In this document: positions 1,190-60,828 of the stretch, piece by piece
Numbering within the stretch: the first letter of the stretch is position 1
Layout: each line of letters starts with the position of its first letter
From: Auanema rhodensis
Taxonomy: Eukaryota > Animalia > Nematoda
Direction: 5' to 3'
NCBI GenBank assembly: GCA_964057225.1
Contig: OZ059894.1
Span: forward strand, 12,028,001 to 12,092,000
Length of the DNA: 64,000 nucleotides
Notes under the pieces: generated by a model
The model's input: only the letters and a program-made list of their open reading frames with translations
Told to the model about the DNA's origin: nothing
The model's database searches: none
Position numbers and translations under genes: made by a program

Positions 1190-4100
1190 GGTTTATTGAA
1201 TAAATAATGTTATGATACAATAAATAACCAATAAAAAAGAGCCCAGAATCGGGGAGACGGTATTACCAGTACAACTTAAAACAGCAAGTGATTAAAAAGT
1301 ACAAAATAAAACACATTACCAACAGAGGCTAAAACGACTCAAGAGTCGGGGGAGTGGGTTAAAAAAAGTAATGAATAACAAAAAAATGAATAATAAAGCA
1401 GAACAGTGAAAAGTAAATATCAAGTGCCGCTATGATCAAACAATTTGAGTGCCTACGGCAATGGTGTTAAAAATAAACAACAAAATACATGTACCAATGA
1501 AGGTCAGAAGGAAAGAGAAAAAAAAAAAAAAAAAAAAAAAGACCAAAATAAGTAATACAAAAAGTAAACACATTACAATCGAATCACAAACAAGTCAATG
1601 GATAATTTCTTCTTCATACTGCCTTACACCAGAAACATGTTCCACGTAGATATTCCTGGCCCACTTGATGGTATCGGCGACGATGAGCTTCTCCATTAGC
1701 CGGTTGTAGTGGCTGCTGATCTTGAGTGATCGGAGGGCTTGTCCGTTGAGCGGGTCCATAGTTCCAAGCGTTCCTACGACATACGCTTCTACACTAGTCT
1801 TATAACCAAGACATTGGTATTGGCTGGCTATGTCAGCATATTTCCTCTCCTTTATCATACGCGCGGCTATCATGGCTTGTCGGCGGTTTTCATAGCTCAC
1901 TGTAACATCAACGATACTACAGTGTTTTGCGTCATGATCGACCACTACTATGTCAGGTCGGAGTGTACTATTAATGCCAGGAAGTGGCTGGTTAGTGTAA
2001 ACTTCTCCGTTTTTAGGCTCTGGCAGGGCTTTGATAAGACGGTCCACGATGTTGTTGTGGCGGAGTTGGATTGCTCTCGTGTGAAAGTGGCAGTGTCCAA
2101 GAACATGTGCAGCAGTTTCGTTGGGGTAACTACACCTGCGGCACTGTTTGTTTCCTTCTCCGTGTCTTCTACAGCCATTGAGCTGGAGAGTATTAAGTCG
2201 AGCCTTGTGGATGAATCGCCAATCAGCAAACCGTATGAAATCTCCCTTCGCCATAAAGTGATTGGACGCTTTGTTGAGCATTGTGACATCAAAGACTTTC
2301 CCTTGATCCGGTTTTTGAAGAAGGATCCGAAGGTCTTTCAGCCATAATGCACGTCGCAGGCTTCTGTGGCATAGTGAAGGTGTTAACAGTTGGTTGTTTA
2401 GATTGAGTTCTAAACCACTTTCGAGGCATGTCCAGTTAGCGTTGATGAGTTTCTTGAGTTGACGCATCGCTACTCTTACTCTAGTCCAGATGGAGGAAAC
2501 ATCAGATGTTTCGGTGTCGAAAATGCCATCAACGGAACCGTTGTAATATGCAGCTGTCTCATCGTTACTGGCTTGACGTTTAATCCTTTTTGATGCTACT
2601 TTTTTTGAGTCTTGATGCGCAATATCAGCTACTACAAGATCAGATGACTTCAAAAGTTGGTAGGCATGAGTGACTTCACAGACGTCTGACAGGTGTTGGA
2701 GTCGAGAGAGACCAAGTCCGCCGTAGTTAGTTGGCAGGTAGATTGGTTCAGCACTGGCGTTTGGAGGATAGTGCATCCATCTACGGGCACAGCGTTTGAG
2801 TTCTTTGTCAAAGGCGACCAGTTTACTCTTTGGGACGTGGCCATTCGTCATATGAAAATTAAGGCAGGGCATCAGGAAGGTGCGTACTGCGTCAGCTTTC
2901 TGCCATTCAGCAAGTAAGGATTTGTCAATTTTTTCCAAGTGTTGACTCATAATATTCACTGTTGGAACCGCAGACTTATGTAAATGCATTCCAGTAGGGA
3001 TTCCCAGGTGGGAGTAGCTGTCGAATTTGCTGAGAGCGGGTAGAGAGGAGCTCTGTAGCATGTATGAGGCTGTTGATATTTTCCCTTTGTCGATCGTCAA
3101 GGTGGCGCATTTCGCTGGTTTGAAGGTCAAGCCTGTGAAATTAGCCGCATTTGATGCTGCGTCCAACATTTTCTGTAGATCTTCTGATGATGAGGAGACC
3201 AGGGCAAGGTCATCGGCGTACGCTAGCACAGCGATGTTGTGGTTGTGTAGCTTATAGCCAGTAGAGGATTCCAAGATGGTTTTAATTAGAGGTTCAATGG
3301 CAAGGTTGAACAGGATCGGAGATAGTGGGGATCCTTGTAACACACCTGCATGAACTGGAATGGTCGATGTGAGTCCGGAGCCTGTCTGGATTCTTGTAGA
3401 GGCATCTGTGTATAGAGCTCGTACTCGGGATATTGAGGCTTCAGCCACTCCTGACCATCTTAGAACGTCTAGCAGAGTTTCGTGTGGCAGCGATCCAAAA
3501 GTGTTTGCGAGATCAAGCCAAGCAATTGCAATTTTCTCACGTTTACGTTTAGCGTCCGCAATGGTACTTTGCAACATAAAGTTGTGTTCCATGCATCCAG
3601 CTTTGGCCACAAAGCCCTTTTGGGAGGGAGAAAGTCTTTTTTCTGCTCTTGCCCATGTTAGCAGTCGATGCGTAAGACAAGCTGAGTACGTCTTACCAAT
3701 TGTGCACGAAAGTGCTATTGGTCGCCAGTTGTTAATGTCAGCTTTATCACCTTTCTTATGGATGAGGACGGTGGTCGACTCTTTCCAGGAAAAAGGGATG
3801 TGTCCTAGCTTGTGTACGGTGTTAAATATCGCTGCTAATATGTGACCTCCTTGGTCAAATTTCTTCCAGTGCGAGTATCGAAGTCCATCAGCTCCTGGAG
3901 CCGTATCGCTGCAACGTCGTATGCGTTCCCAGACTTCCAAAGGGGTGAAAACACCTTCTAATGGGTCGGTACTAGCTGGCAAATCCGGTCTGGTGACTGT
4001 GATGGGGAGGGCTGGGCCTTGACTGCTGTGAACAGAAAGGAAATGTTTTTCAACCTCTGCAGATGGTATGGTGCAGGTTTCACTTTGTTCTCCGAGCAGT

Positions 4101-4925
4101 TGTCGAAAGGCTTTCTTCTTGTTGGCCCTCCAGAGCTTCTGGAGCTTCATCGCCTGGGTTTTTTGGTCTTCCTCAGGTTGTGTGTGTGGTCGGCGCCTTT
4201 GTCGGAAGTTGGGAACTTTGATCATAATGTCAAGAGACTTTCTGATTGCGTCTACCAACTCTTCCAGGACCTGCTCGAGCTCACTTTTGCACACAACCTT
4301 TTTAATTCTATCCACCCAAGTATTTTCAGAGTTTCTATTCGGATCAGGGTCGGCAAAAGATGGTTCTGTACTCGGAACCCTGATCTCGTTGAATATTTCA
4401 CTCTCTCGCGGAAGGGGGGAAACTTCGGCCTCTGGGGACAAGTCCAGAATTGGGGCCTCAAACAAGCGTACCGTTGATGGAGATCCTTGTTCCTGTCCAC
4501 TGGATGATGTTTCCTCCATTGTACGCTCCTCCACGGGCGGGGTGGTCGTCCTTGTGCCTGGTGGGCGGGTGTTCCTGATCCTCCGCAATATAGGGCGGGA
4601 ACTGGGCTCTCTCGGAGATAGAGGTGAGATCACCACAGTTTCCTCTATGATGCGGAGGCATCCTTCAGCTTTTTTCTGATGGCTTTTAACGGCCTTCAGA
4701 TTGCTGGTGAGGCCACAGGCACGGCACTCAAATTCTACTCCGACCTCATGTTCTCTCCGAAGATGGCGGACGAGACCATTGTGGTCTGAGTAGGATCGCG
4801 GAATAGGAGCGCAGATTGAACAAGAAAAAGGCCTCTGAAGAGGCACCTTTAGCTTGTAAAGCCCTTGCTCCATCTCTAGCAGATCTAAAGACTTACGTAG
4901 TACAGTTGCAATATCGATTTAGCCA
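1190..4925 (-). mobile_element. Utopia-type (NeSL clade) U2-specific non-LTR retrotransposon, full length, copy 1
   Basis: Inserted after U2 GTGTAGTA (nt 39, equivalent to human nt 38). Single RT-RLE ORF; 405-bp 3' UTR ending TTCAATAAACC; flanked by duplicated U2 nt 40-96. Confidence 0.93.
1595..4873 (-). CDS. Non-LTR retrotransposon protein: N-terminal zinc fingers, reverse transcriptase, CCHC knuckle, restriction-like endonuclease (1092 aa)
   Basis: CSIC..HLRREH and CRAC..H zinc fingers; NWRPIAL, QKGF, GVLQGSPLSP and YADD RT motifs; CRRC..H..GHC, RHN, RPD..D..K..KY RLE motifs. Confidence 0.96.
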   Translation of the reverse strand: MEQGLYKLKVPLQRPFSCSICAPIPRSYSDHNGLVRHLRREHEVGVEFECRACGLTSNLKAVKSHQKKAEGCLRIIEETVVISPLSPREPSSRPILRRIRNTRPPGTRTTTPPVEERTMEETSSSGQEQGSPSTVRLFEAPILDLSPEAEVSPLPRESEIFNEIRVPSTEPSFADPDPNRNSENTWVDRIKKVVCKSELEQVLEELVDAIRKSLDIMIKVPNFRQRRRPHTQPEEDQKTQAMKLQKLWRANKKKAFRQLLGEQSETCTIPSAEVEKHFLSVHSSQGPALPITVTRPDLPASTDPLEGVFTPLEVWERIRRCSDTAPGADGLRYSHWKKFDQGGHILAAIFNTVHKLGHIPFSWKESTTVLIHKKGDKADINNWRPIALSCTIGKTYSACLTHRLLTWARAEKRLSPSQKGFVAKAGCMEHNFMLQSTIADAKRKREKIAIAWLDLANTFGSLPHETLLDVLRWSGVAEASISRVRALYTDASTRIQTGSGLTSTIPVHAGVLQGSPLSPILFNLAIEPLIKTILESSTGYKLHNHNIAVLAYADDLALVSSSSEDLQKMLDAASNAANFTGLTFKPAKCATLTIDKGKISTASYMLQSSSLPALSKFDSYSHLGIPTGMHLHKSAVPTVNIMSQHLEKIDKSLLAEWQKADAVRTFLMPCLNFHMTNGHVPKSKLVAFDKELKRCARRWMHYPPNASAEPIYLPTNYGGLGLSRLQHLSDVCEVTHAYQLLKSSDLVVADIAHQDSKKVASKRIKRQASNDETAAYYNGSVDGIFDTETSDVSSIWTRVRVAMRQLKKLINANWTCLESGLELNLNNQLLTPSLCHRSLRRALWLKDLRILLQKPDQGKVFDVTMLNKASNHFMAKGDFIRFADWRFIHKARLNTLQLNGCRRHGEGNKQCRRCSYPNETAAHVLGHCHFHTRAIQLRHNNIVDRLIKALPEPKNGEVYTNQPLPGINSTLRPDIVVVDHDAKHCSIVDVTVSYENRRQAMIAARMIKERKYADIASQYQCLGYKTSVEAYVVGTLGTMDPLNGQALRSLKISSHYNRLMEKLIVADTIKWARNIYVEHVSGVRQYEEEIIH

Positions 4926-5021
4926 TTAACCTTATTGTGAACCAATGGAACACATATCGAAGGTTAATTCGATAAGAACGATTACTACACTTTGATCTTA
5001 GCCAAAAGGCCGAGAAGCGAT
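4926..5021 (-). pseudogene. U2: U2 snRNA 5' part (nt 1-96) fused to Utopia copy 1
   Basis: ATCGCTTCTCGGCCTTTTGGCTAAGATC... The match stops 3 nt before the Sm site. Confidence 0.92.
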
Positions 5022-6134: not shown

Positions 6135-7311
6135 ACAGTAAAAAGTCCAATCAAGAGAGAAATTTTTTCAACACATAGTTGTTTTTTTTTTAAATATCAT
6201 TGTTTTTCCTCATAACTCGGTTTAAACTCGTTCTAACCCGTTGAAATACGTCTAGAAAGTCTTTATAACATGCATATGTATGATAGAACTTCATATTTAT
6301 TGTAATAGAAAATTTTATTTTCAGACGTCTTGGTTAACAATGATATGTTTTACCCCCTTATAATTTTTATCATAATGTTCCTTATACGGAACGCTCAATG
6401 AAACTTGCTTCCAGAAAAATTTCTTTCTATTTTTTCTTCATATGTACGTAGATACTATAGAGAACTATGATAGAAAACTTTAACATTCACGAAATCATCA
6501 TTTCTCATTACGCTACGGAGGTTTAAAAAGCTGTGTTTTACCTTATAATAGACCGGAAAACCCTTGTGTTAAAACTGGACCGTTTTTACACATATAAAAA
6601 TGTCCCGTATTCGGGACCCTAATGTAACTTTTGATTCCCTATATTTTTTTTCATGAAATTTACAATCTACTGTAGAAAGAAGAATTATTTTTATAAAAAC
6701 TGTAAATTTTTGAAAAATGAAAACAAAACGAAAACAAAAACAACTTTTTTTTGAACATTTTCTCACACAAGGGTCCCCCCTTACCTACTTTTTTTCTCAT
6801 TACTCGTTTCAACCTCATCCGATCACTCTGCAAACATGTTTAATCGTTCTAACTTGTTGAAATACGTCTTAAAAGTCTAAACAACATGCATATGCATAAT
6901 AGAAACCACCCGAATAGGCCCCCACGCACTAAACGAGATATATACATTACCAGTATAGTAATAGAACACATATTGAAGATTAATTCGATAAGAACAATTT
7001 ATTGACGTAGAGAATGTTTGTTCCGAAAAACTACAATATTAAACTATAAAAGTAACAAAAGCGTAGAGGCAGCAAAGACATGAATAAACATAAATGTAAA
7101 TACAGAATTACCAGGTAGTACATAAGTATGACAAAAAATTATAAGAAAGCCATGAAAATAGAAGGTTTGTGAACAAATGAGAGGTACATCTTTGATCGTA
7201 TAGTCATTTCTAAACCGTTCGTATGCTGCAGCATCGTCATAAGCGTCACTCAAGTTGAATTTCCATGTGTACTACACGATTTTCATTCTTATTGTTACAT
7301 TCTTTCCCTGA

Positions 7312-7500
7312 GGGAATAGGCCGTTCCCGCCAGCAGTGCAAGAGCGGGTCGACCCGTGAGGTGGAGCTAGCAAGCCAGCATCTACCTCAAGTCTCAAAAA
7401 TCGGTTAACCTTATTGTGAACCAATGGAACACATATCGAAGGTTAATTCGATAAGAACGATTACTACACTTTGATCTTAGCCAAAAGGCCGAGAAGCGAT
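7312..7500 (-). ncRNA. U2: U2 snRNA
   Basis: Full ~189 nt: canonical 5' end, GTAGTA branch-point recognition, Sm site, TTGCAC loop IV. One 3'-end variant at 7318. Confidence 0.95.
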
Positions 7501-16059: not shown

Positions 16060-17606
16060 TGTGGTGCAAAATATAGTAACCTCTTGAAAAAAATCTAAAT
16101 TTTTTTAATATCAATATTTTTCTGAACAATGTTCACAAATAAATAATAAACACTCCTACATGTGTCAAACCATAAATAAAGCAAGGTGTCAACGCATGTC
16201 ATAAAAAAGATATATGAACAAAACCTTTTTTTCAGCGATCATTACTATCATCAAAAAAAACTTTAAAATAATTTTTTTTGCTTTCAACTTAATTTTTTGA
16301 ATATTTTTGCTAATTCTTGAAATTTATTCAGGCTTTACCTGAATAATGCCCGGAACCAGAGACTTGTCAGTTGCTGAGAAAGCTCAAATCCACGCCTTTT
16401 CTGTCGCGGGTTGGAGCCATCGAGCAATTGCCGAAAATCTGGGCCGTGCACGAAGCACGGTGACCCGCTTCTTATCAGAAGGTAGCGTCAATTCAAGACG
16501 TTCAAATTGTGGTAGGAAGCCTGTTTTGAATGACAGGGATAAGAGGCGAATTATACGTTTAGCGTCTAATTCTACTAACAGTTGTAGTACTATTGCAGGC
16601 AAACTGCATTTAAACGTATCGAGATGGACGGTACGCAAGGTTCTGTCACAAGCGACAACCATAAAGAGAGCTAAAATGAGAAAAGCCCCGTTTTTGACCC
16701 CTGTTCATAAGAGAAATAGGGTCCTTTTTGCCGAAGAGAATGAGGAGCGAGAGTGGACAAAAGTAAACAGAATATAAAAAACGTAGATTTTAATTTCTTT
16801 GTTCTAGGTCATATTTTCTGATGAAAAGAAGTTCAACCTCGATGGTCCTGACGGAGTCCATCATTATTGGAGGGACCTTCGTAAGGAGCCGAGGTACTTC
16901 TCAAAACGTACCGCTGGAGGAGGTTCAGTTATGGTTTGGGCTGCATTTTCCTCAACGGGAAAGTTGCAGATCCAATTCACAACGAACACACTAAACTCCG
17001 AGGACTATCAGGCTATCCTACAAGATAGTCTGATTCCTTATATCAACAGTTATCCTGATGAAAATTTGATTTTTCAACAAGATAATGCCCCCATCCATGC
17101 CAGTAGGTCCACAAAAACATGGCTGGATGAACATAATATTAGTGTTTTGAAATGGCCTTCCAATTCCCCTGATCTAAACCCTATAGAAAATCTATGGGGT
17201 ATTCTTGTTAAAAAGCTGTACGAAGATGGAAGACAGTATGAAAATACTAGACAACTTCGGACAGCAATTTTAAATGCATGGGACCTCCTATCAATTGAAA
17301 CCTGTTCAAATTTGGCATCAAGCATGCCAAGACGTTTAGCTCAGGTAATTGAAAACAATGGAGGTCCTACTTCATATTAAAATTGTGTTTTTTTAATTTT
17401 TTGTTTAACTTCATTTTTGCCCAAAAGTTGTAAAAAAAATATTTTCACTTTTTCTCACATCCACATTGTTAATTAATTTTCCTCTCAATAATAAAATGTT
17501 TGTTAATTTGAAAGCTTCTAAACAATACAAAAAGATTTGGAACAAAACATCATTTGAAAAAAAAAAAAGTTAAAATAAAGAGGTTACAATATTTTGCACC
17601 ACAGTG
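16057..17606 (+). mobile_element. Tc1/mariner superfamily, Tc3-like DNA transposon (1550 bp) inserted in (TA)n
   Basis: 29-bp TIRs CACTGTGGTGCAAAATA(T)WGTAACCTCTT at 16057-16085 and 17578-17606 (1 mismatch); TA on both sides. Confidence 0.95.
16346..17380 (+). CDS. Tc3-like DD34E transposase, 329 aa, two exons (16346-16762, 16808-17380)
   Basis: A 45-nt GT..AG intron at 16763-16807 joins WTK to VIFSDEKKFNLDGPDG in frame. QQDNAP and SPDLNPIEN motifs; N-terminal HTH. Confidence 0.94.
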
Positions 17607-18798
17607 TATATATATATATCAACAGTAAAAAGTCCAATCAAGAGAGAAATTTTTTCAACACATAGTTGTTTTTTTTTTAAATATCATTGTTTTTCCTCAT
17701 AACTCGGTTTAAACTCGTTCTAACCCGTTGAAATACGTCTAGAAAGTCTTTATAACATGCATATGTATGATAGAACTTCATATTTATTGTAATAGAAAAT
17801 TTTATTTTCAGACGTCTTGGTTAACAATGATATGTTTTACCCCCTTATAATTTTTATCATAATGTTCCTTATACGGAACGCTCAATGAAACTTGCTTCCA
17901 GAAAAATTTCTTTCTATTTTTTCTTCATATGTACGTAGATACTATAGAGAACTATGATAGAAAACTTTAACATTCACGAAATCATCATTTCTCATTACGC
18001 TACGGAGGTTTAAAAAGCTGTGTTTTACCTTATAATAGACCGGAAAACCCTTGTGTTAAAACTGGACCGTTTTTACACATATAAAAATGTCCCGTATTCG
18101 GGACCCTAATGTAACTTTTGATTCCCTATATTTTTTTTCATGAAATTTACAATCTACTGTAGAAAGAAGAATTATTTTTATAAAAACTGTAAATTTTTGA
18201 AAAATGAAAACAAAACGAAAACAAAAACAACTTTTTTTTGAACATTTTCTCACACAAGGGTCCCCCCTTACCTACTTTTTTTCTCATTACTCGTTTCAAC
18301 CTCATCCGATCACTCTGCAAACATGTTTAATCGTTCTAACTTGTTGAAATACGTCTTAAAAGTCTAAACAACATGCATATGCATAATAGAAACCACCCGA
18401 ATAGGCCCCCACGCACTAAACGAGATATATACATTACCAGTATAGTAATAGAACACATATTGAAGATTAATTCGATAAGAACAATTTATTGACGTAGAGA
18501 ATGTTTGTTCCGAAAAACTACAATATTAAACTATAAAAGTAACAAAAGCGTAGAGGCAGCAAAGACATGAATAAACATAAATGTAAATACAGAATTACCA
18601 GGTAGTACATAAGTATGACAAAAAATTATAAGAAAGCCATGAAAATAGAAGGTTTGTGAACAAATGAGAGGTACATCTTTGATCGTCTAGTCATTTCTAA
18701 ACCGTTCGTATGCTGCAGCATCGTCATAAGCGTCACTCAAGTTGAATTTCCATGTGTACTACACGATTTTCATTCTTATTGTTACATTCTTTCCCTGA

Positions 18799-18948
18799 GG
18801 GAATGGGCCGTTCCCGCCAGCAGTGCAAGAGCGGGTCGACCCGTGAGGTGGAGCTAGCAAGCCAGCATCTACCTCAAGTCTCAAAAATCGGTTAACCTTA
18901 TTGTGAACCAATGGAACACATATCGAAGGTTAATTCGATAAGAACGAT
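18799..18948 (-). pseudogene. U2: U2 snRNA 3' part (nt 40-189), interrupted by the short element
   Basis: Identical to U2 nt 40-189. Confidence 0.92.
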
Positions 18949-19732
18949 TTATTGAAGTAGATAATGTTTGTCCCGGAGGACTACAATTTTAAAATAATTA
19001 CTGAAGCCGTTAGGCAGCGAGAAAATAGTAAGGATACTATCCGCACTGAGTGCGTCGTATCATGAAAAAAAAAAGAGAATGTAAAGAAGGCAGAGCATAG
19101 ACTTAGATAATGACATCACTAGTTGTAGATTTGTGGCATCTGCAGCTGCGGGTATGAGGATCAGCATGAACAGATTAAATTTACATGAACAAAGTGGGAA
19201 CATTTTGAGGAACTTAGGGAACGGAGTAATGCGATCATTTTCAAAAATAGAATTACCTATCTGTAGCTACGGATAAAGAGGAATAGCTTTGAATAGATGG
19301 AAATTTACATGAAAATATGTGACATTATGAAACAGCACAATAGATAATGAGACTACGGAAAAAATAGTATCCTTTTGCGTTCTTGATGGATCTGCGGCTC
19401 CCGTCATTGGCTGCGGTTTCGGTGCTCAGCTGGCTAGTCGTCGGCGTTGGACATCGTGGATCGTAATGAGGTTTTCCATAGATTCCGGCTCGGCTGGTTC
19501 TGTGTGCGTTCTTCTCCGTTGTCGTGGTGGTGTTCTTCTCGGCTTTTTCTTTCTCCAAAATTTAACTATACTGAAGGTAGAGCTTTGTTTCACAATTGCT
19601 ACCAAGAGTGAAGAACATTAGCTACTACCAACAGCATAGGACCGCCTCAAGGCCTGGTAGATCAATCAGTGTTGCTTCAATCACCAAGTATTGCGGCCTA
19701 GGCCCTTGGATCAATTCACAACACCAGTATAG
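18949..19732 (-). mobile_element. 784-bp non-autonomous U2-targeted retroelement (SINE/SIDE-like)
   Basis: Same insertion site as Utopia. 3' end CTACTTCAATAA versus Utopia TTCAATAAACC. Flanked by 40-bp duplicated U2 nt 40-79 (18909-18948, 19733-19772). No long ORF. Confidence 0.85.
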
Positions 19733-19811
19733 CAATGGAACACATATCGAAGGTTAATTCGATAAGAACGATTACTACACTTTGATCTTAGCCAAAAGGC
19801 CGAGAAGCGAT
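19733..19811 (-). pseudogene. U2: U2 snRNA 5' part (nt 1-79) fused to the short element
   Basis: Exact U2 nt 1-79. Confidence 0.92.
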
Positions 19812-20920: not shown

Positions 20921-22097
20921 ACAGTAAAAAGTCCAATCAAGAGAGAAATTTTTTCAACACATAGTTGTTTTTTTTTTAAATATCATTGTTTTTCCTCATA
21001 ACTCGGTTTAAACTCGTTCTAACCCGTTGAAATACGTCTAGAAAGTCTTTATAACATGCATATGTATGATAGAACTTCATATTTATTGTAATAGAAAATT
21101 TTATTTTCAGACGTCTTGGTTAACAATGATATGTTTTACCCCCTTATAATTTTTATCATAATGTTCCTTATACGGAACGCTCAATGAAACTTGCTTCCAG
21201 AAAAATTTCTTTCTATTTTTTCTTCATATGTACGTAGATACTATAGAGAACTATGATAGAAAACTTTAACATTCACGAAATCATCATTTCTCATTACGCT
21301 ACGGAGGTTTAAAAAGCTGTGTTTTACCTTATAATAGACCGGAAAACCCTTGTGTTAAAACTGGACCGTTTTTACACATATAAAAATGTCCCGTATTCGG
21401 GACCCTAATGTAACTTTTGATTCCCTATATTTTTTTTCATGAAATTTACAATCTACTGTAGAAAGAAGAATTATTTTTATAAAAACTGTAAATTTTTGAA
21501 AAATGAAAACAAAACGAAAACAAAAACAACTTTTTTTTGAACATTTTCTCACACAAGGGTCCCCCCTTACCTACTTTTTTTCTCATTACTCGTTTCAACC
21601 TCATCCGATCACTCTGCAAACATGTTTAATCGTTCTAACTTGTTGAAATACGTCTTAAAAGTCTAAACAACATGCATATGCATAATAGAAACCACCCGAA
21701 TAGGCCCCCACGCACTAAACGAGATATATACATTACCAGTATAGTAATAGAACACATATTGAAGATTAATTCGATAAGAACAATTTATTGACGTAGAGAA
21801 TGTTTGTTCCGAAAAACTACAATATTAAACTATAAAAGTAACAAAAGCGTAGAGGCAGCAAAGACATGAATAAACATAAATGTAAATACAGAATTACCAG
21901 GTAGTACATAAGTATGACAAAAAATTATAAGAAAGCCATGAAAATAGAAGGTTTGTGAACAAATGAGAGGTACATCTTTGATCGTATAGTCATTTCTAAA
22001 CCGTTCGTATGCTGCAGCATCGTCATAAGCGTCACTCAAGTTGAATTTCCATGTGTACTACACGATTTTCATTCTTATTGTTACATTCTTTCCCTGA

Positions 22098-22286
22098 GGG
22101 AATGGGCCGTTCCCGCCAGCAGTGCAAGAGCGGGTCGACCCGTGAGGTGGAGCTAGCAAGCCAGCATCTACCTCAAGTCTCAAAAATCGGTTAACCTTAT
22201 TGTGAACCAATGGAACACATATCGAAGGTTAATTCGATAAGAACGATTACTACACTTTGATCTTAGCCAAAAGGCCGAGAAGCGAT
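22098..22286 (-). ncRNA. U2: U2 snRNA
   Basis: Intact array copy. Confidence 0.95.
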
Positions 22287-24736: not shown

Positions 24737-27700
24737 GGTTTATTGAATAAATAATGTTATGATACAATAAATAACCAATAAAAAAGAGCCCAGAATCGGG
24801 GAGACGGTATTACCAGTACAACTTAAAACAGCAAGTGATTAAAAAGTACAAAATAAAACACATTACCAACAGAGGCTAAAACGACTCAAGAGTCGGGGGA
24901 GTGGGTTAAAAAAAGTAATGAATAACAAAAAAATGAATAATAAAGCAGAACAGTGAAAAGTAAATATCAAGTGCCGCTATGATCAAACAATTTGAGTGCC
25001 TACGGCAATGGTGTTAAAAATAAACAACAAAATACATGTACCAATGAAGGTCAGAAGGAAAGAGAAAAAAAAAAAAAAAAAAAAAAAGACCAAAATAAGT
25101 AATACAAAAAGTAAACACATTACAATCGAATCACAAACAAGTCAATGGATAATTTCTTCTTCATACTGCCTTACACCAGAAACATGTTCCACGTAGATAT
25201 TCCTGGCCCACTTGATGGTATCGGCGACGATGAGCTTCTCCATTAGCCGGTTGTAGTGGCTGCTGATCTTGAGTGATCGGAGGGCTTGTCCGTTGAGCGG
25301 GTCCATAGTTCCAAGCGTTCCTACGACATACGCTTCTACACTAGTCTTATAACCAAGACATTGGTATTGGCTGGCTATGTCAGCATATTTCCTCTCCTTT
25401 ATCATACGCGCGGCTATCATGGCTTGTCGGCGGTTTTCATAGCTCACTGTAACATCAACGATACTACAGTGTTTTGCGTCATGATCGACCACTACTATGT
25501 CAGGTCGGAGTGTACTATTAATGCCAGGAAGTGGCTGGTTAGTGTAAACTTCTCCGTTTTTAGGCTCTGGCAGGGCTTTGATAAGACGGTCCACGATGTT
25601 GTTGTGGCGGAGTTGGATTGCTCTCGTGTGAAAGTGGCAGTGTCCAAGAACATGTGCAGCAGTTTCGTTGGGGTAACTACACCTGCGGCACTGTTTGTTT
25701 CCTTCTCCGTGTCTTCTACAGCCATTGAGCTGGAGAGTATTAAGTCGAGCCTTGTGGATGAATCGCCAATCAGCAAACCGTATGAAATCTCCCTTCGCCA
25801 TAAAGTGATTGGACGCTTTGTTGAGCATTGTGACATCAAAGACTTTCCCTTGATCCGGTTTTTGAAGAAGGATCCGAAGGTCTTTCAGCCATAATGCACG
25901 TCGCAGGCTTCTGTGGCATAGTGAAGGTGTTAACAGTTGGTTGTTTAGATTGAGTTCTAAACCACTTTCGAGGCATGTCCAGTTAGCGTTGATGAGTTTC
26001 TTGAGTTGACGCATCGCTACTCTTACTCTAGTCCAGATGGAGGAAACATCAGATGTTTCGGTGTCGAAAATGCCATCAACGGAACCGTTGTAATATGCAG
26101 CTGTCTCATCGTTACTGGCTTGACGTTTAATCCTTTTTGATGCTACTTTTTTTGAGTCTTGATGCGCAATATCAGCTACTACAAGATCAGATGACTTCAA
26201 AAGTTGGTAGGCATGAGTGACTTCACAGACGTCTGACAGGTGTTGGAGTCGAGAGAGACCAAGTCCGCCGTAGTTAGTTGGCAGGTAGATTGGTTCAGCA
26301 CTGGCGTTTGGAGGATAGTGCATCCATCTACGGGCACAGCGTTTGAGTTCTTTGTCAAAGGCGACCAGTTTACTCTTTGGGACGTGGCCATTCGTCATAT
26401 GAAAATTAAGGCAGGGCATCAGGAAGGTGCGTACTGCGTCAGCTTTCTGCCATTCAGCAAGTAAGGATTTGTCAATTTTTTCCAAGTGTTGACTCATAAT
26501 ATTCACTGTTGGAACCGCAGACTTATGTAAATGCATTCCAGTAGGGATTCCCAGGTGGGAGTAGCTGTCGAATTTGCTGAGAGCGGGTAGAGAGGAGCTC
26601 TGTAGCATGTATGAGGCTGTTGATATTTTCCCTTTGTCGATCGTCAAGGTGGCGCATTTCGCTGGTTTGAAGGTCAAGCCTGTGAAATTAGCCGCATTTG
26701 ATGCTGCGTCCAACATTTTCTGTAGATCTTCTGATGATGAGGAGACCAGGGCAAGGTCATCGGCGTACGCTAGCACAGCGATGTTGTGGTTGTGTAGCTT
26801 ATAGCCAGTAGAGGATTCCAAGATGGTTTTAATTAGAGGTTCAATGGCAAGGTTGAACAGGATCGGAGATAGTGGGGATCCTTGTAACACACCTGCATGA
26901 ACTGGAATGGTCGATGTGAGTCCGGAGCCTGTCTGGATTCTTGTAGAGGCATCTGTGTATAGAGCTCGTACTCGGGATATTGAGGCTTCAGCCACTCCTG
27001 ACCATCTTAGAACGTCTAGCAGAGTTTCGTGTGGCAGCGATCCAAAAGCGTTTGCGAGATCAAGCCAAGCAATTGCAATTTTCTCACGTTTACGTTTAGC
27101 GTCCGCAATGGTACTTTGCAACATAAAGTTGTGTTCCATGCATCCAGCTTTGGCCACAAAGCCCTTTTGGGAGGGAGAAAGTCTTTTTTCTGCTCTTGCC
27201 CATGTTAGCAGTCGATGCGTAAGACAAGCTGAGTACGTCTTACCAATTGTGCACGAAAGTGCTATTGGTCGCCAGTTGTTAATGTCAGCTTTATCACCTT
27301 TCTTATGGATGAGGACGGTGGTCGACTCTTTCCAGGAAAAAGGGATGTGTCCTAGCTTGTGTACGGTGTTAAATATCGCTGCTAATATGTGACCTCCTTG
27401 GTCAAATTTCTTCCAGTGCGAGTATCGAAGTCCATCAGCTCCTGGAGCCGTATCGCTGCAACGTCGTATGCGTTCCCAGACTTCCAAAGGGGTGAAAACA
27501 CCTTCTAATGGGTCGGTACTAGCTGGCAAATCCGGTCTGGTGACTGTGATGGGGAGGGCTGGGCCTTGACTGCTGTGAACAGAAAGGAAATGTTTTTCAA
27601 CCTCTGCAGATGGTATGGTGCAGGTTTCACTTTGTTCTCCGAGCAGTTGTCGAAAGGCTTTCTTCTTGTTGGCCCTCCAGAGCTTCTGGAGCTTCATCGC

Positions 27701-28472
27701 CTGGGTTTTTTGGTCTTCCTCAGGTTGTGTGTGTGGTCGGCGCCTTTGTCGGAAGTTGGGAACTTTGATCATAATGTCAAGAGACTTTCTGATTGCGTCT
27801 ACCAACTCTTCCAGGACCTGCTCGAGCTCACTTTTGCACACAACCTTTTTAATTCTATCCACCCAAGTATTTTCAGAGTTTCTATTCGGATCAGGGTCGG
27901 CAAAAGATGGTTCTGTACTCGGAACCCTGATCTCGTTGAATATTTCACTCTCTCGCGGAAGGGGGGAAACTTCGGCCTCTGGGGACAAGTCCAGAATTGG
28001 GGCCTCAAACAAGCGTACCGTTGATGGAGATCCTTGTTCCTGTCCACTGGATGATGTTTCCTCCATTGTACGCTCCTCCACGGGCGGGGTGGTCGTCCTT
28101 GTGCCTGGTGGGCGGGTGTTCCTGATCCTCCGCAATATAGGGCGGGAACTGGGCTCTCTCGGAGATAGAGGTGAGATCACCACAGTTTCCTCTATGATGC
28201 GGAGGCATCCTTCAGCTTTTTTCTGATGGCTTTTAACGGCCTTCAGATTGCTGGTGAGGCCACAGGCACGGCACTCAAATTCTACTCCGACCTCATGTTC
28301 TCTCCGAAGATGGCGGACGAGACCATTGTGGTCTGAGTAGGATCGCGGAATAGGAGCGCAGATTGAACAAGAAAAAGGCCTCTGAAGAGGCACCTTTAGC
28401 TTGTAAAGCCCTTGCTCCATCTCTAGCAGATCTAAAGACTTACGTAGTACAGTTGCAATATCGATTTAGCCA
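24737..28472 (-). mobile_element. Utopia-type U2-specific non-LTR retrotransposon, full length, copy 2
   Basis: Same junctions and length as copy 1, offset 23547 bp. Confidence 0.93.
25142..28420 (-). CDS. Non-LTR retrotransposon ZnF-RT-RLE protein (1092 aa)
   Basis: As copy 1, but DLANAFGS instead of DLANTFGS. Confidence 0.96.
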   Translation of the reverse strand: MEQGLYKLKVPLQRPFSCSICAPIPRSYSDHNGLVRHLRREHEVGVEFECRACGLTSNLKAVKSHQKKAEGCLRIIEETVVISPLSPREPSSRPILRRIRNTRPPGTRTTTPPVEERTMEETSSSGQEQGSPSTVRLFEAPILDLSPEAEVSPLPRESEIFNEIRVPSTEPSFADPDPNRNSENTWVDRIKKVVCKSELEQVLEELVDAIRKSLDIMIKVPNFRQRRRPHTQPEEDQKTQAMKLQKLWRANKKKAFRQLLGEQSETCTIPSAEVEKHFLSVHSSQGPALPITVTRPDLPASTDPLEGVFTPLEVWERIRRCSDTAPGADGLRYSHWKKFDQGGHILAAIFNTVHKLGHIPFSWKESTTVLIHKKGDKADINNWRPIALSCTIGKTYSACLTHRLLTWARAEKRLSPSQKGFVAKAGCMEHNFMLQSTIADAKRKREKIAIAWLDLANAFGSLPHETLLDVLRWSGVAEASISRVRALYTDASTRIQTGSGLTSTIPVHAGVLQGSPLSPILFNLAIEPLIKTILESSTGYKLHNHNIAVLAYADDLALVSSSSEDLQKMLDAASNAANFTGLTFKPAKCATLTIDKGKISTASYMLQSSSLPALSKFDSYSHLGIPTGMHLHKSAVPTVNIMSQHLEKIDKSLLAEWQKADAVRTFLMPCLNFHMTNGHVPKSKLVAFDKELKRCARRWMHYPPNASAEPIYLPTNYGGLGLSRLQHLSDVCEVTHAYQLLKSSDLVVADIAHQDSKKVASKRIKRQASNDETAAYYNGSVDGIFDTETSDVSSIWTRVRVAMRQLKKLINANWTCLESGLELNLNNQLLTPSLCHRSLRRALWLKDLRILLQKPDQGKVFDVTMLNKASNHFMAKGDFIRFADWRFIHKARLNTLQLNGCRRHGEGNKQCRRCSYPNETAAHVLGHCHFHTRAIQLRHNNIVDRLIKALPEPKNGEVYTNQPLPGINSTLRPDIVVVDHDAKHCSIVDVTVSYENRRQAMIAARMIKERKYADIASQYQCLGYKTSVEAYVVGTLGTMDPLNGQALRSLKISSHYNRLMEKLIVADTIKWARNIYVEHVSGVRQYEEEIIH

Positions 28473-28568
28473 TTAACCTTATTGTGAACCAATGGAACAC
28501 ATATCGAAGGTTAATTCGATAAGAACGATTACTACACTTTGATCTTAGCCAAAAGGCCGAGAAGCGAT
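28473..28568 (-). pseudogene. U2: U2 snRNA 5' part (nt 1-96) fused to Utopia copy 2
   Basis: Exact U2 nt 1-96. Confidence 0.92.
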
Positions 28569-29681: not shown

Positions 29682-30858
29682 ACAGTAAAAAGTCCAATCA
29701 AGAGAGAAATTTTTTCAACACATAGTTGTTTTTTTTTTAAATATCATTGTTTTTCCTCATAACTCGGTTTAAACTCGTTCTAACCCGTTGAAATACGTCT
29801 AGAAAGTCTTTATAACATGCATATGTATGATAGAACTTCATATTTATTGTAATAGAAAATTTTATTTTCAGACGTCTTGGTTAACAATGATATGTTTTAC
29901 CCCCTTATAATTTTTATCATAATGTTCCTTATACGGAACGCTCAATGAAACTTGCTTCCAGAAAAATTTCTTTCTATTTTTTCTTCATATGTACGTAGAT
30001 ACTATAGAGAACTATGATAGAAAACTTTAACATTCACGAAATCATCATTTCTCATTACGCTACGGAGGTTTAAAAAGCTGTGTTTTACCTTATAATAGAC
30101 CGGAAAACCCTTGTGTTAAAACTGGACCGTTTTTACACATATAAAAATGTCCCGTATTCGGGACCCTAATGTAACTTTTGATTCCCTATATTTTTTTTCA
30201 TGAAATTTACAATCTACTGTAGAAAGAAGAATTATTTTTATAAAAACTGTAAATTTTTGAAAAATGAAAACAAAACGAAAACAAAAACAACTTTTTTTTG
30301 AACATTTTCTCACACAAGGGTCCCCCCTTACCTACTTTTTTTCTCATTACTCGTTTCAACCTCATCCGATCACTCTGCAAACATGTTTAATCGTTCTAAC
30401 TTGTTGAAATACGTCTTAAAAGTCTAAACAACATGCATATGCATAATAGAAACCACCCGAATAGGCCCCCACGCACTAAACGAGATATATACATTACCAG
30501 TATAGTAATAGAACACATATTGAAGATTAATTCGATAAGAACAATTTATTGACGTAGAGAATGTTTGTTCCGAAAAACTACAATATTAAACTATAAAAGT
30601 AACAAAAGCGTAGAGGCAGCAAAGACATGAATAAACATAAATGTAAATACAGAATTACCAGGTAGTACATAAGTATGACAAAAAATTATAAGAAAGCCAT
30701 GAAAATAGAAGGTTTGTGAACAAATGAGAGGTACATCTTTGATCGTATAGTCATTTCTAAACCGTTCGTATGCTGCAGCATCGTCATAAGCGTCACTCAA
30801 GTTGAATTTCCATGTGTACTACACGATTTTCATTCTTATTGTTACATTCTTTCCCTGA

Positions 30859-31047
30859 GGGAATAGGCCGTTCCCGCCAGCAGTGCAAGAGCGGGTCGAC
30901 CCGTGAGGTGGAGCTAGCAAGCCAGCATCTACCTCAAGTCTCAAAAATCGGTTAACCTTATTGTGAACCAATGGAACACATATCGAAGGTTAATTCGATA
31001 AGAACGATTACTACACTTTGATCTTAGCCAAAAGGCCGAGAAGCGAT
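30859..31047 (-). ncRNA. U2: U2 snRNA
   Basis: Intact; shares its 3'-end variant (30865) with 7318. Confidence 0.95.
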
Positions 31048-48991: not shown

Positions 48992-49232
48992 AATGTTATA
49001 TTCTTCATTATCAGTTATATCACTCTAAATCTTGTTGTTAATAGTTAGGACCACAAAGAAAACAACAGGAACAGTAACAAATGAAATGCCCAAACTTTAC
49101 AGTGTTCGAGTTATTTACAGTATCTAAGACTACCTCTGTCGTGTTATTAGAGCAAACATTCGATTAACAACAACTTTTTTTTAGTTATCAAAGCTTTTTT
49201 ATTTCTTCAAAAAATTTCAAATAAAATATAAA

Positions 49233-49288
49233 AGCTTACGACACCCGGGATTCCCAAGCCGTCTCCGATCCAAGTACTAACCGGGCCC
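49233..49288 (-). pseudogene. 5S: 5S rRNA 3' half (nt 64-119), interrupted by the LTR element
   Basis: 5S sequence stops at GGCCC|TGTCAC. Confidence 0.93.
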
Positions 49289-49616
49289 TGTCACGGTCAA
49301 CGTGAAAATACGAACTTTATTGTGTTAACGTTTTGTTGTATTTTTTGTATTAACTCCACCCCCTTTAACCATCTGGTGCCTCCCTATAAAAGGGAGAACC
49401 AAATGGTTAAAATTTTCATGTCTCACCAATTTTGTATTGATTTTAGGATTTCTTGGAATTTCTAGAATCAATCCACTTGTTCACTTTACTGTTGTTGCAT
49501 TTATTGAATAAACCTTTCTTCATTTAACTTGTCTTAACGCATAATACCGCACTCATACGAACCGACTCCATACTTGGACTGATACTTGGAGGTAAAAGTC
49601 CAGTTGTCAAGCGACA
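49289..49616 (+). repeat. 5' LTR
   Basis: TGTCAC...GCGACA, with TATAAAA and AATAAA. Appears identical to the 3' LTR. Confidence 0.96.
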
Positions 49617-49618
49617 TT

Positions 49619-49635
49619 TGGCGACCACGGCAGGA
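49619..49635 (+). other. Primer-binding site (probably tRNA-Arg)
   Basis: TGGCGACCACGGCAGGA, 2 nt after the LTR; complement of a tRNA 3' end TCCTGCCGTGGTCG-CCA. Confidence 0.8.
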
Positions 49636-49864
49636 TATTTCAGTTGCTTACTGATAAGGAAAGTTTAAAACAAAGGTTATATAAAACCGCCGGAGAAATA
49701 AATTCCGAAGAACATTGTGTTAAAGGTTATATAGAACCGCCGGAGAAATAAAATTCCGAAGAACTCGTAGAAAATCCGAGTTGACAAGAAATCACTTGTC
49801 AAGAAACAATAAGACGATAAAAATATCGCTGAATCTGAAATATCCATTGAGGAAGGCTAAAATA

Positions 49865-52800
49865 ATGTCCTCCGCTCAAAGATATATTCTCCAAATGGGG
49901 AGAGAATTAGAATTTTTGAATAAACTGAATTCTAAAGTTGAAAACTATAAGAAAATGACCGATTACTCAGAATTGTCTGAGCCGGTAAATCAAATTATTG
50001 CGCAAGAGAATGAATGTGCAAGAGTTAAAAATTACTTGAATATTTTGGAGAATAAACTCCAATCAATTGAAACCATTGAAATAAATTTTCAAAGAGTTTG
50101 TGAGCTTTTAGAAGAAGAGCTCCAAAAAGAATTAAACAAAAAATTTACAAAAATCGAAGAAGGTGAAAAAGGAGACATCCGTGGCAATGCCACGTTAATA
50201 ATTCTGGAATTAAATGACAAGTTGATATTCTTAAAAAACCTCATTGATAAAAATAAAGAAAAAATCAAAGATATGGAAATACAACTTGAATTACAACAAC
50301 TTCGGGAAAGAGTTGAATATACAGAAGAAAAAGAATATGAAAATTGTACAAACGAGGTACAAGAAAAACAAAACAGTTTACCCGATCAGGTAGTGCATGA
50401 TCAGCATGTTAATGAAGTAAGACTGATTAACCAAATACTGCAAAGACCCGTATTAAAAACTCCAACCTTTGACGGTACTCCGGAAAAATTCCCTTTATTC
50501 TGGGATAGATTCATGAGAATGATTGATAACAATGAATCTTTCTCTATAAGTGAAAAAGTGAACTTCCTATGTGAGTCCTTATCAGGTGAAGCCGAATATC
50601 TTCTTAGGGGAATTCCCGGTACCGAAGAAAACTATGAGTTTATGAAAAATTGTTTGAAGGAAGAATATTCCTCATACGCTGTTGATACAGCAACGCTGAT
50701 CAACAAGTTGAATAAGGTGCCAAAAGCTTCAAGACGAGCCGATAGTTGTGCTCAAACGCTAAGAGAGATAAAAGCTCTGCTGCGACAGATTCAAGCGGCG
50801 GGAGGATCTTTAACCAAAGAGCTTTATGTTGCTACCGTACTCAATAAATTCCCATTTGAAATAATCAAAGATATTCACATCAAACAAAATTTTGAATGGT
50901 CCCACGAGAAAATCATTGAACATATTTCGGCGCAAGTAAAACTACTACAGATGACTGAAAACACTGAATCACTGTATCTCAGTAACAATGAAAAAAGTAA
51001 AAATCCAGATGGTGATCAAACTAAAAAACAATTTCGATTGAATGAAGTTAAGGATTTGAAACAAAGAAGGAATTGCGTTTTTTGCGCGAACAATTCACAC
51101 AATAGCCATATGTGTCCTATTGAAACAACGGAAAAAAGGAAAATTTTAAGAGAAAAAAGGCTATGTTATGTATGCTTTGCAGACAATCATCAAAGCAAAA
51201 ACTGCACATGGCCAAAGTTTAAATGCAACAGCTGTCATGATGATCACAACATTTCAGTTTGTTACCAAAATAAAAGAAATCAGAATAGAAATGGAGTCAT
51301 CACCAACATTTCTTTACAAAGGGGTAATGATGAAGAAAAGACCAGAAATAATCAAACAATTATTCCAAAGAAAGCACATGAAGAACCCACAAGTTTAACC
51401 ACAATTGTTGGTAATCATGACGTAGAAAAAGGCCAAATAATTTTACGAACAGCAAAAGCAAATTTGTTCAATTACAATAGCGATAGTTATGAGAAAGTTA
51501 ACATTATTTTTGATGATTGTTCTCAACGATCTTTTATCAGAGAAGATCTAGCAAAAAGGATGAAACTACCAGTTAAATCCAAACAAAGAAAAACATTTCA
51601 TGGTATTGGAGGAATGAAACATTCTCATGTTTCAAGTATAGTAAACACAATATTCTATACTAAAGAGAAAAATTTAATTGTAACTGAAATGCTCACTAAG
51701 CCAAAAATCAGTTCCCACATATATAGTCCTTATCTTTCAAGAAAGGATTTGAGCTTCATTAAAGAAAATAATATTATATTAGCCAATACCGATACAAATG
51801 GGGAAGTTTTTGAACCGGATGTTTTGATTGGACAAGATAGATTAAAATTGTTCGTAAAAGACAATGAAGAATTCAGACTTCCCTCTGATCTTTTATGTAA
51901 AGGATCTGTATTTGGAACTCTTATAAATGGAGAAACTAAACTTGAAAAAATTGTAACTCTGTGTAGCATTGAAGAGGAACAAAGTCATGAACCACCTCCA
52001 GAAACAAAACTGAAAGAACTTTTCCTTATCGATACTATTGGAATAAGCACCATAGTAGATAACAATGCAGAAGCAGAGAATTATCTTAAAGAATATAGTA
52101 AAGAACTATCCATTAAAGCCGGGAGAATTGAAGCTCCGTTTCCATTTAAAAATTATTTGAATAAATTGAAAAATAATAAATGGCCAGCTTTTCATAGATT
52201 CATGACATTATGGAAAAATCTACACTCTAATAAAGAACAACTAGAATGGTATAAAAAATTAATAAATGAATACATTCAAAAAGGAATTATCGAGCCAATT
52301 GTTGATGAATCAGCCGAAGATGGATTTTTCTTACCACATCATGGAGTGTGGAGAAAAGAAAAAGCTCGACCTTTAAGAATCGTGTTTGATGCTTCAGCAA
52401 AACAAAAAAATAGTCCATCGTTGAACCAAGTTATGCATTCAGGCCAAACATTTATTCACAAAATTCATGATATATTAATAAAATGTAGAAAAAGTCCAAT
52501 AATAATAACCTGCGACATTGAGTCAGCATTTTTACAAATAAGTATTAAAGAAGAGCACAGAAAATATTGTAAATTTTTCTGGATTAGAAACGAAAATGAA
52601 TCGGTAAATAAATATAACGTCATGACATACCAATTCAAACGGCTACCATTTGGTATAACAGCGTCCCCGGGTATATTAAGCATGAGCTTAGCTTGGTACC
52701 TCAATAATCATACCGACCCTTACGCTAGTCACTTGCTCGATTCTTTATATGTTGACAATATAATTTTATATGCAAACAGTGTTGAAGAAGCTAAGATAAA

Positions 52801-56242: not shown

Positions 56243-57890
56243 AGTAATAGAATTTTACACAGAAAACCATGAATCTAAAAATGAAAAAACATTAACCAAT
56301 TATCTTGCCGAAAAGAATATTAAATGGTACTTCAACACACCACAGGCTCCATGGAAAGGTGGAACATGGGAAAGACTAGTAGGACTAACAAAGTTAGCAC
56401 TATACAAAACAATTGGAAATAGATTAATGTCAATTGATGATATACATACAGTAATTGTAAAAATCGAAACAATTTTGAATACTCGCCCGCTTACACATCC
56501 GAACCCATCCAACCTGAACATTTTGCCTATCAGACCTTGTGATTTTTTAAACCGTTCCATCAGGTTTACACTTTCTTCAAACGTATCGAATACCCGAATT
56601 TATGATAAAACTATCAATAGCAGGACAATACAAACTATAGAGCAAGCCATTGAAGCAATAGAGTTATCTAACGATGTAACTCAATTATTCTGGAAAAAAT
56701 TCTATTCAGAGTATTTACTGTATCTTAGAGATATTTACAAACACAACAGAAAACAACCTGCAACGAACGCTAAGAAACCACAAGAAGGCGAAGTTATTAT
56801 AATACAAAATGAGGATTCAAGTAGAGGTAAATGGAAATTAGGACGCATAATAGAACTAATAAAAAGTGCAGATGGGGAAGTTAGATCTGCAAAACTAATA
56901 ACTGGCACTGGTCTCATAACAACTCGTTCATTAAATCACATATATCCACTAGAAGTGAGAAACGCAGAAGCAGCACCGTTTGCGTCAGAACCTCACTCAA
57001 TGAGATACAATAAAAAATACCAAGTGAATCCATTTTTAATCACCGGGACGGTAACACAAAAAGGAAATCGGGTTGAAAATATTGAAATTATTGAAAATAC
57101 TCAAGAAAGTGAACAAAGTAACAATGTAATACCACTCGAAATCTATACACCCAACATGAATATCATCAACGACGCAGGAGACGAAAATGATGCTAATAAT
57201 ACGAACTTAGAACAAGAGGAAGATCAAACAAATGAGATAACTCTTCAAACCGAAAATGAATCCAAACCTTCAAATCTAAATAGATGGTTCAGAACAAAAA
57301 CACAGGGTAGTCAAGCAGCGGTAAGAAGTTATTTTAAGAAAAATAAAATAAAAACAAATGTTCCAAAAGTAGCTCTTCTTGGAATAATTCCAACGATTGA
57401 GGCTACATGCCAATCCTCTGAATTGCTTACAGCGGAAGCATTATATTTCCCACAATGTAATCCATTAACGACTTTGATAACATTTTTCATACCAATTATA
57501 CTATTATTTACTATATTAGCAATTTGTAAAAGAGTATTGAAAGCTCATAAAAATGACCAATATTGGTATAAATTTTTAAATGATAATTGGCAAACGATAC
57601 AAACCGAAGTTAGAAGTGGAAAACCTAATTCAAAAATATTAACAAGTTCAGACGATGTAGCCGTACAAAAGGAAAACACAGTAGCCACGAAATTTGACAA
57701 TGTAACTCCAAAATGGAAAAATGATATTCCAGAAACTATTAAAATTCCAAATTACATGAGAACATCATCATTCACTTCATTACAATTATCGATAGCACTC
57801 ATGGTATTATTAATAACAGTGGAATCTTGTTCAAACTCACATATTAAGCATTCAATAAATATAATTTGCATTAATCGGACAAATTGTTAT
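54589..57890 (+). repeat. 1651-bp perfect tandem duplication (54589-56239 / 56240-57890)
   Basis: TAAAGTAATAGAATTTTACAC restarts at 56240, and the peptide is duplicated in both ORFs. Confidence 0.95.
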
Positions 57891-59348: not shown

Positions 59349-59466
59349 AACACTAATCTTACTGTAGTAATAAAAAAAAAAAAAAAAACTTTATTAATTA
59401 GCTATAAGAACAGTTTAAAAACACAAAAAAAAAAAAAAAAAAAAAAACAAAAACAAAACAAAAACA

Positions 59467-59905: not shown

Positions 59906-60357
59906 CTGCAACAATTACAACTATAAAAATAAAAAAAAATAAAAATAAAAATAAAATAAAAAATAAAAATAAAGTCAAGAGGGAAGTACAAAAACTTCAC
60001 GAATACAATAAAAAATTAAATTACTAATCACACGTAGTACAATAGTAAAAAATATAAACAAAGCAAAAATAGGTCATAAAATAATATAAACAAAAGAAAA
60101 TCACTACATATAGAAACAAATGCAACAGTTATAAACAAACAAATCTTTTTATCAAGATCTTCAATCTTTGATAACATCAAGTTTATTTATCCGAATAATA
60201 TACATAAAAAGTAATCCTTTGTACAGGCTTTTTATACATTGTATCCGTAAACACATACTATTCTACAATAAACTAAGGGACGTTTATCATAGGTCAACCC
60301 ACAGATGCGAACAAATATATAAAGAGGGAAACCATTGTTTTTCTCAATTCAGTGCTA

Positions 60358-60819: not shown

Positions 60820-60828
60820 TGCCGGGAA

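Follow-up and report, generated by a model that had tools for sequence, protein, structure and literature searches.

The window analysed here, a stretch of 64,000 nucleotides from the nematode Auanema rhodensis, contains a U2 snRNA gene that is interrupted by a non-coding insert of 784 bp, and the locus raises the question of what this insert, termed S1, is and by what means it has been copied. The window belongs to a tandem array whose unit of ~2.48 kb comprises one U2 snRNA gene and two 5S rRNA genes, all on the minus strand. Fourteen of its 17 U2 genes are intact, two are split by a larger element, termed A, and one is split by S1. Copy numbers for the array were determined by exact-pattern searches over the genome, which yielded a total of 449 U2 gene bodies. 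An intact U2 gene of 190 nt (22097-22286, minus strand) served as the U2 reference for the S1 locus; the U2 copies at 7311-7500 and 30858-31047 differ at one position from the other intact copies of the window (99.5% identity).

Some further features of the array were observed. U2 genes on the plus strand number 35, and among the matches listed they are positioned at 10.96 and 11.23-11.30 Mb, which points to an inverted stretch of the array at ~11.22-11.30 Mb. Five full-length copies of A are also located on the plus strand (11.22-11.30 Mb), and a genome-wide exact-pattern search identified no S copies on that strand. The (TA)n spacer of the unit that carries S1 is occupied at positions 16085-17645 of the window by a DNA transposon of the Tc1/Tc3 type, which has terminal inverted repeats and ORF pieces that match the Tc3 HTH and DDE_3 families. 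Between 5S genes, an insertion of ~12 kb (window about 49000-61100) represents a Bel/Pao-type LTR retroelement with a gag-pol of 2153 aa (Peptidase_A17, RT, integrase) and a second, env-like ORF of 973 aa with a Phlebovirus G2 fusion domain.

Read along the minus strand, the interrupted host gene starts with U2 nt 1-39 (19773-19811), which are identical to the intact U2 at 22097-22286 and end, directly before the insertion point, in the GTAGTA branch-point recognition sequence. There follows a head consisting of U2 nt 40-79 (19733-19772), which is repeated downstream of S1 and is 100% identical to U2 in 30 of the 30 loci read; then S1 itself (18949-19732), one of three S1 copies that are 99% alike; and finally U2 nt 40-190, the 3' part of the host gene as determined by comparison with U2 (18798-18948). 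The earlier note on this DNA had described a non-coding 784-bp insert after U2 nt 39, at the same base and in the same orientation as the autonomous element, with U2 nt 40-79 on either side. This description proved correct: nt 40-79 run from 19772 to 19733 and start again from 18948, and the longest ORF of S1 encodes 77 aa. The 3' end of S1, TTCAATAA, directly abuts U2 nt 40, and the ending is, as the note had stated, common to S1 and A, with ACC added before nt 40 in A. That the arrangement is not due to chance is evident from 35 exact matches in the genome for the S1-S3 5' junction and 46 for the S-type 3' junction, while reversed-pattern controls for the 5' junction, the 3' junction and the core of the 5' module gave 0 matches each.

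Utopia elements are U2-specific non-LTR retrotransposons with nematode members in Pristionchus and Trichinella (PMC4640811). The first copy of A in the window has a length of 3753 bp (1190-4942, minus strand) and is flanked by U2 nt 40-96; the second (24737-28489, minus strand, 3753 bp) is 99.97% identical to it. The A ORF (1595-4873) encodes a protein of 1092 aa with RT, CCHC motif and restriction-like endonuclease, which matches RVT_1 at 3e-27 and aligns to solved R2 structures through RT, CCHC and the PD-(D/E)xK endonuclease block. Both window copies have the same orientation as S1 and are joined at their 3' end to U2 nt 40. Genome-wide, 47 full-length copies of A were identified by a count of full-length 5' junctions, and the reading frame is open in at least 42 copies. 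Globodera, Diploscapter and the scorpion Centruroides provide the nearest named relatives, all of them uncharacterised proteins; the two closest relatives (55% identity) reside on GC-rich metagenome contigs and have no U2 flanks. In addition to A, a second autonomous element, termed B, was found in a U2 gene directly downstream of an A copy (L054:46-3983, about 10961685-10965622 of the same chromosome, minus strand). B is 3938 bp long, its head consists of U2 nt 40-89, and it occurs as a single copy in the assembly. The B protein aligns colinearly with that of A in two pieces (48% identity over 816 aa and 60% over 274 aa), between which the reading frame is broken by a single in-frame TAA. The insertion site of A and B, just after the branch-point recognition sequence, is that described for Utopia (PMC4640811), and by their domain set together with the insertion at this conserved U2 position both are classed as Utopia.

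S1 belongs to a family, termed S, which by a genome-wide exact-pattern count of the core of the 5' module comprises 47 copies in four subfamilies: S1 (784-785 bp, three copies), S2 (788-789 bp, 28 copies and one S2/A hybrid), S3 (743-744 bp, three copies) and S4 (865-866 bp, 12 copies). The pairwise identity between the subfamilies is 55-70%. A whole-genome DNA search returned about 40 full-length matches, located at 10.9-12.1 Mb on the same chromosome and on the U2 strand. All S copies fall within the U2/5S array of a single chromosome and share one strand, and the genome-wide exact-pattern counts revealed none outside U2 genes. Of the S-type 3' junctions, 45 pair one-for-one with full-length S copies, and the 46th is the tail of B itself; one S4 copy runs into an N stretch at its 3' end. 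Since the 3' junctions are thus made up of those of full-length S copies and B, the genome contains no 5'-truncated S and none outside U2 genes. In 30 of the 30 loci that were fully read, the junctions are identical, in the order U2 nt 1-79, S, TTCAATAA and U2 nt 40, and one subfamily ends in GTCAATAA instead of TTCAATAA, again followed by U2 nt 40. The earlier note had expected many copies, all at U2 nt 39/40 and with the nt-79 5' boundary in common, rather than a single copy or copies at unrelated sites, and this is what the 47 copies, all within U2 genes, display. The distribution is not that of a classical SINE with dispersed insertions, as 47 of 47 copies lie in U2 genes of one array.

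Each S copy consists of the head of U2 nt 40-79, a 5' module of 108 nt, a drifting body and a conserved 3' module. In S1, the 5' module (S nt 1-108) is located at 19625-19732 and the 3' module (S nt about 660-784) at 18949-19073, the latter with an S-specific hairpin followed by the tail. Averaged over the pairs of S1-S4, identity amounts to ~0.88 for S nt 1-108, 0.3-0.55 in the middle and ~0.73 for the last ~125 nt, and there is no ORF common in place or sequence to S1-S4. The ends of S therefore show signs of selection, while the middle appears decayed or free to drift. In the 5' module, the substitutions specific to S4 are concentrated in two short segments, S 7-13 and 60-66, which could form a helix. 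Two of its base pairs are changed on either side in S4 and yet remain paired, a weak indication, as 27 of 500 shuffles equal it and the comparison comprises four distinct sequences only. RNAalifold predicted a long hairpin without compensatory changes for the S 5' region, and the single-sequence fold of the region was unremarkable (z = -1.5). A custom descriptor scan for an HDV-like fold identified no candidate conserved across all S subfamilies, no Rfam family was found in S by a search at E up to 10, and no tRNA was found in S by ARAGORN. Runs of T7-T12 occur inside S1-S3, and T5 in S4, all of them upstream of the tail, which argues against transcription of S by Pol III. A classical SINE head, i.e., one from tRNA, 7SL or 5S RNA with an internal Pol III promoter, was thus rejected, on the internal T runs and the lack of a tRNA or Rfam match.

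As a separate observation, short complementarities to U2 are found close to the 5' end of S. In S4, nine bases just before the 5' module are complementary to U2 nt 31-39 (S4 leader of L031; alignments), and in S1-S3 seven bases with one wobble are complementary to U2 just upstream of the nick (window 19722-19732). ACTAC or TACTAC is present in the leaders of A and B.

A first possibility for the origin of S is that it represents a plain 5'-truncated or internally deleted Utopia copy, a SIDE in the strict sense. S and B indeed have homologous tails, with 78-82% identity between the terminal 80-85 nt of B and the ends of S1-S3 (18949-19033 in S1), and the terminal box AACATT..YTA.KTCAATAA (18949-18970) is, by alignment, common to S, B, A and a fossil element described below. 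A shares with S only this box of ~20 nt. Beyond the ~85-nt tail, sensitive BLAST revealed no similarity of S to A or B, either as DNA or translated, and all 47 occurrences of the 5' module are in short elements. The note's observation that S1 has no further extended identity to the resident Utopia is in agreement with this, as the sensitive search found the terminal box only; a second Utopia colinear with the 784 bp, which the note had named as a sign of truncation, was not encountered, since B shares only ~85 nt. As there is no longer element colinear with S, S is not a plain truncation; this explanation, which we regard as very improbable in general, already fails in this assembly. An R2-type SIDE in the strict sense was likewise rejected, as S has no 5' similarity to A or B and no Rfam ribozyme at E 10 or better. 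The last ~85 nt of S instead likely derive from the 3' UTR of a B-type autonomous Utopia, as judged from the alignments. With a tail from a LINE-like element and a 5' part of other origin, S is built like a SINE. With regard to a non-autonomous partner, S lacks coding capacity, has the site, orientation and 3' junction of the autonomous elements and shares their 3' end.

The head is not peculiar to S, as A is also flanked on both sides by U2 sequence (nt 40-96). The head boundary is fixed for each element type: the head ends at nt 79 in every S subfamily but extends to nt 89 in B and to nt 96 in A, and this family-specific length indicates that the head is inherited. Truncated copies of A provide a comparison. 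A has 63 3' ends versus 47 full-length 5' junctions, and about 26 of the ends are without a full-length 5' junction at the expected distance. Eight unpaired A 3' ends were fetched, and in four of these the sequence read ended short of the 5' joint; with L038, which had been found earlier, the readable truncated copies numbered four. In L038, the 5' joint is exact at nt 39 and there is no repeat; in L049, U2 nt 1-39 are lost and a T-run filler is present; L052 has U2 nt 1-121, i.e., an 82-nt duplication, followed by a stuttered piece of A; and L047, which begins at A nt 2636, is joined to a GTGTAGTA-like site within the spacer that precedes it, ~2.2 kb being lost. The other three of the four (L038, L049 and L052) begin at A nt 3574-3585, just after a T-run. 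As the 5' joints of truncated A vary, the heads most likely travel on the RNA template. Most simply, a full-length template would begin within the host U2 gene and bring the head with it, and each new copy would then rebuild U2 nt 1-79 (or 1-89, 1-96) ahead of it. For R2, uniform 5' junctions were obtained with target sequence on the RNA and variable junctions without it (PMC3774820), and the joints of A, S and B would match this rule by analogy.

Alternatively, the 40-bp repeat may be an ordinary target-site duplication that arises at each insertion from a staggered cut, with the bottom strand cleaved at nt 39/40 and the top strand at nt 79/80, and is not borne on the RNA. In that case, a common length would be expected for elements with one driving enzyme, and the repeat would be expected in truncated copies as well. 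Flanking repeats of Utopia have been treated in this way, and 20-bp duplications are reported for reptile families (PMC4640811). The geometry is also that expected from target-primed reverse transcription (TPRT) with a downstream top-strand cut, and the complete identity of all S heads to U2, which fits gene conversion, would also fit heads made afresh from the target. The repeat length is, however, fixed per element family (79, 89 and 96) and not per enzyme, and a fixed stagger would not give the spread from no duplication over deletion to an 82-nt duplication that is observed in truncated A. In addition, the A copy upstream of S in L031 keeps nt 80-96, which are absent beside nt 79 there, a pattern that recombination could mimic. 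We therefore consider a target-site duplication rather unlikely, and regard the head as most likely template-borne.

Since the heads of S, A and B include sequence from downstream of the nick, a repeat results and the target is rebuilt. Various stacks of elements were found: A-head-S1-head-A, S4-head-S2, S3-head-A and A-head-B, as well as four S4 copies in a row followed by A and a truncated A before a full A. In the last of these, the 5'-truncated A sits in the rebuilt site before the full A, so that the rebuilt site is re-used by A. Crossing-over within the 40-nt heads could also build such stacks, and the stacks alone are thus no proof of repeated insertion. The earlier note had taken the U2 head of the insert for a device that rebuilds the target. 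Re-use of the rebuilt site is in favor of this idea, but the device is not special to S, as all three element types have heads.

A related structure recurs throughout the array: each unit contains, ~30 nt beyond the end of its U2 gene, a fossil element (18431-18764, minus strand) that starts with a GTGTAGTA-like site (18764-18757), continues with ~217 nt that resemble the B 3' UTR (18703-18487, 77% identity) and a degenerate U2 nt 40-79 (18486-18447), and ends with the first 10-15 nt of S (18446-18431). The similarity to the 5' end of S stops after 15 nt and is not significant by score alone, its weight coming only from its position. The sequence before the S-type 5' junction of the fossil is B-like and not S-like. 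From this order of parts, the spacer that follows each U2 gene is interpreted as a worn U2 pseudogene, in which what is left of a truncated B-like tail precedes the nt 40-79 head and the first bases of S. As the fossil occurs in every unit, the S-type 5' junction would be older than the present array unit.

Copies within a tandem array may also multiply without transposition. S could be a passive passenger, i.e., one or a few old insertions of a now dead element that were spread and diversified only by unequal crossing-over and gene conversion, S itself being not, or no longer, mobilised. Twenty identical S2 copies are regularly spaced at 2.9-3.3 kb, indicating that array recombination and not transposition made much of the copy number. 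The four-fold S4 stack, in which variants alternate, suggests block duplication; there are no truncated S copies and none outside the array; no insertion polymorphism of S was encountered; and B is single-copy with a stop. Other observations are at odds with purely passive spread. The three S1 copies, which are separated by as much as 0.9 Mb, have 6-10 differences in 784 positions, whereas no substitutions were found in the 1500 nt upstream of L001 and L003, two of these copies; a divergence of ~1% between S1 copies, next to identical flanks in the pair compared, suggests that S copies do not simply travel with the array units. The upstream flanks of an S1 unit and an S2 unit are also identical, and their inserts are only 70% alike. 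Four lineages that are 30-45% diverged persist in near-identical units with only both ends conserved, near-identical S4 copies occur in at least five different contexts over 1 Mb, and the fossil has the same junction and appears to predate the present unit. Purely passive spread is therefore considered improbable, though less so than the target-site duplication discussed above.

The results are best explained if S is a SINE-like non-autonomous retroelement that is confined to the Utopia site of U2 genes and is mobilised by Utopia from RNA made at the U2 promoter, a reading to which we assign a probability of about 0.68. S most likely borrows the Utopia enzyme. By analogy with R2, we infer the following course, in which S would be transcribed from the U2 promoter and may be active at present. 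The host U2 promoter would transcribe U2 nt 1-79 together with S, and a Utopia RT/endonuclease acting in trans would bind the tail of this RNA. It would then nick a further U2 gene on the antisense strand, between nt 39 and 40, and reverse-transcribe the RNA. Finally, the U2 part at the end of the cDNA would anneal to the upstream target, resulting in an exact 5' joint; U2 nt 1-79 would thereby be recreated, with an intact landing site before the new copy. Afterwards, unequal crossing-over in the array may amplify some S copies locally. With regard to transcripts, four small sequencing runs of one study, the RNA nature of which is only guessed, contain 80-86% of the S1 words.

The S2/A hybrid (L037, sense 1764-2683, about 11338.5-11339.3 kb) consists of S2 nt 1-~744 and the last 176-186 nt of A. 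Its joint lies at a TTTTAA microhomology after the T-run of A, where three of the four readable truncated A copies begin. Such a structure would be produced by a template jump from the RNA of A to that of S, a process reported for R2 (PMC3414825), and S RNA would then have been close to a working Utopia RT; a deletion could give the same structure.

Which element drives S is less clear from the tails. The partnership with Utopia that the earlier note had proposed is in part supported by the common site and the shared tail, but the likely source of this tail is B (78-82% over ~85 nt) and not the resident A. The driver of S is therefore perhaps a B-type element rather than A. As B has an in-frame stop and A shares only ~20 nt of the tail, neither is clearly a competent driver. 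A more far-reaching reading, which we consider tentative and rather doubtful, is that S represents a new class of promoterless SINE-like element that rebuilds 79 nt of its host gene, has a new functional RNA in its 5' module and has switched from B to A. If so, the 5' module might be, e.g., a protein-recruiting or processing structure that lets S outlive its original partner B, and by always rebuilding the promoter-proximal 79 nt of a Pol II snRNA gene, S would never leave that gene family.

S agrees with Utopia as described (PMC4640811) in its target base and its precise 3' junction. Insertions in tandem within U2 genes, as well as 5' boundaries that vary between families, have been reported there too (PMC4640811). 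In contrast, the repeats here look template-borne, and the lineage without protein matches the autonomous one in copy number. Neither 'non-autonomous' nor 'ribozyme' occurs as a term in the Utopia paper (PMC4640811), and a full-text literature search gave no report of a non-autonomous Utopia partner or of a partner for any snRNA-gene target; both are in line with the earlier note, which knew of no described nematode example.

The closest parallel among known elements may be drawn to the R2 SIDEs of Drosophila (PMC3414825), which are also short and non-coding and occupy the landing site of a retrotransposon with restriction-like endonuclease in an RNA-gene array. Both would be co-transcribed with the host gene, as inferred for S, and use the 3' end of the partner for target-primed reverse transcription, and both show hybrids as from template jumps. 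However, SIDEs are internal deletions that keep the R2 5' ribozyme (PMC3414825), whereas S has no 5' sequence in common with either Utopia and no ribozyme was found in it. S furthermore carries a host-gene head from downstream of the nick, resides in a Pol II snRNA gene and not in rDNA, and is split into four old subfamilies.

SINEs with an snRNA head have been described only from crocodilians, where they are dispersed (SINEU, PMC4494074). These U1/U2-derived heads likewise place U2 sequence at the 5' end of a short retroelement, and transcription without an internal Pol III promoter is a question for both. SINEU copies, in contrast to S, occur at dispersed sites, most of them within a Mariner family, and Tx1 elements are presumed to mobilise them; the SINEU head, which begins close to U2 nt 1, moves along with the element, whereas the S head comprises nt 40-79 and S never leaves U2 genes. 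For R2 with upstream 28S sequence on its RNA (PMC3774820), the uniform 5' junctions are likewise explained by host sequence at the 5' end of the template. There, the retained sequence is located upstream of the insertion site and set by the ribozyme cut.

S is thus a real and well-defined non-coding passenger lineage of Utopia in U2 genes. To our knowledge, non-autonomous partners have been described for only a few site-specific retrotransposons, notably the SIDEs of R2. The U2 array constitutes a compact natural system, in which 47 riders and 47 full-length drivers share 449 targets with a second driver that is nearly extinct. It bears on how an element without protein keeps pace with its driver in a concertedly evolving gene array, on whether S can change its driver, and on how template-borne host-gene sequence fixes the 5' joint and regenerates the target. 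About one fifth of the U2 genes are interrupted (47 S, 47 full-length A and truncated A among 449), raising the question of how this is tolerated by the genome.
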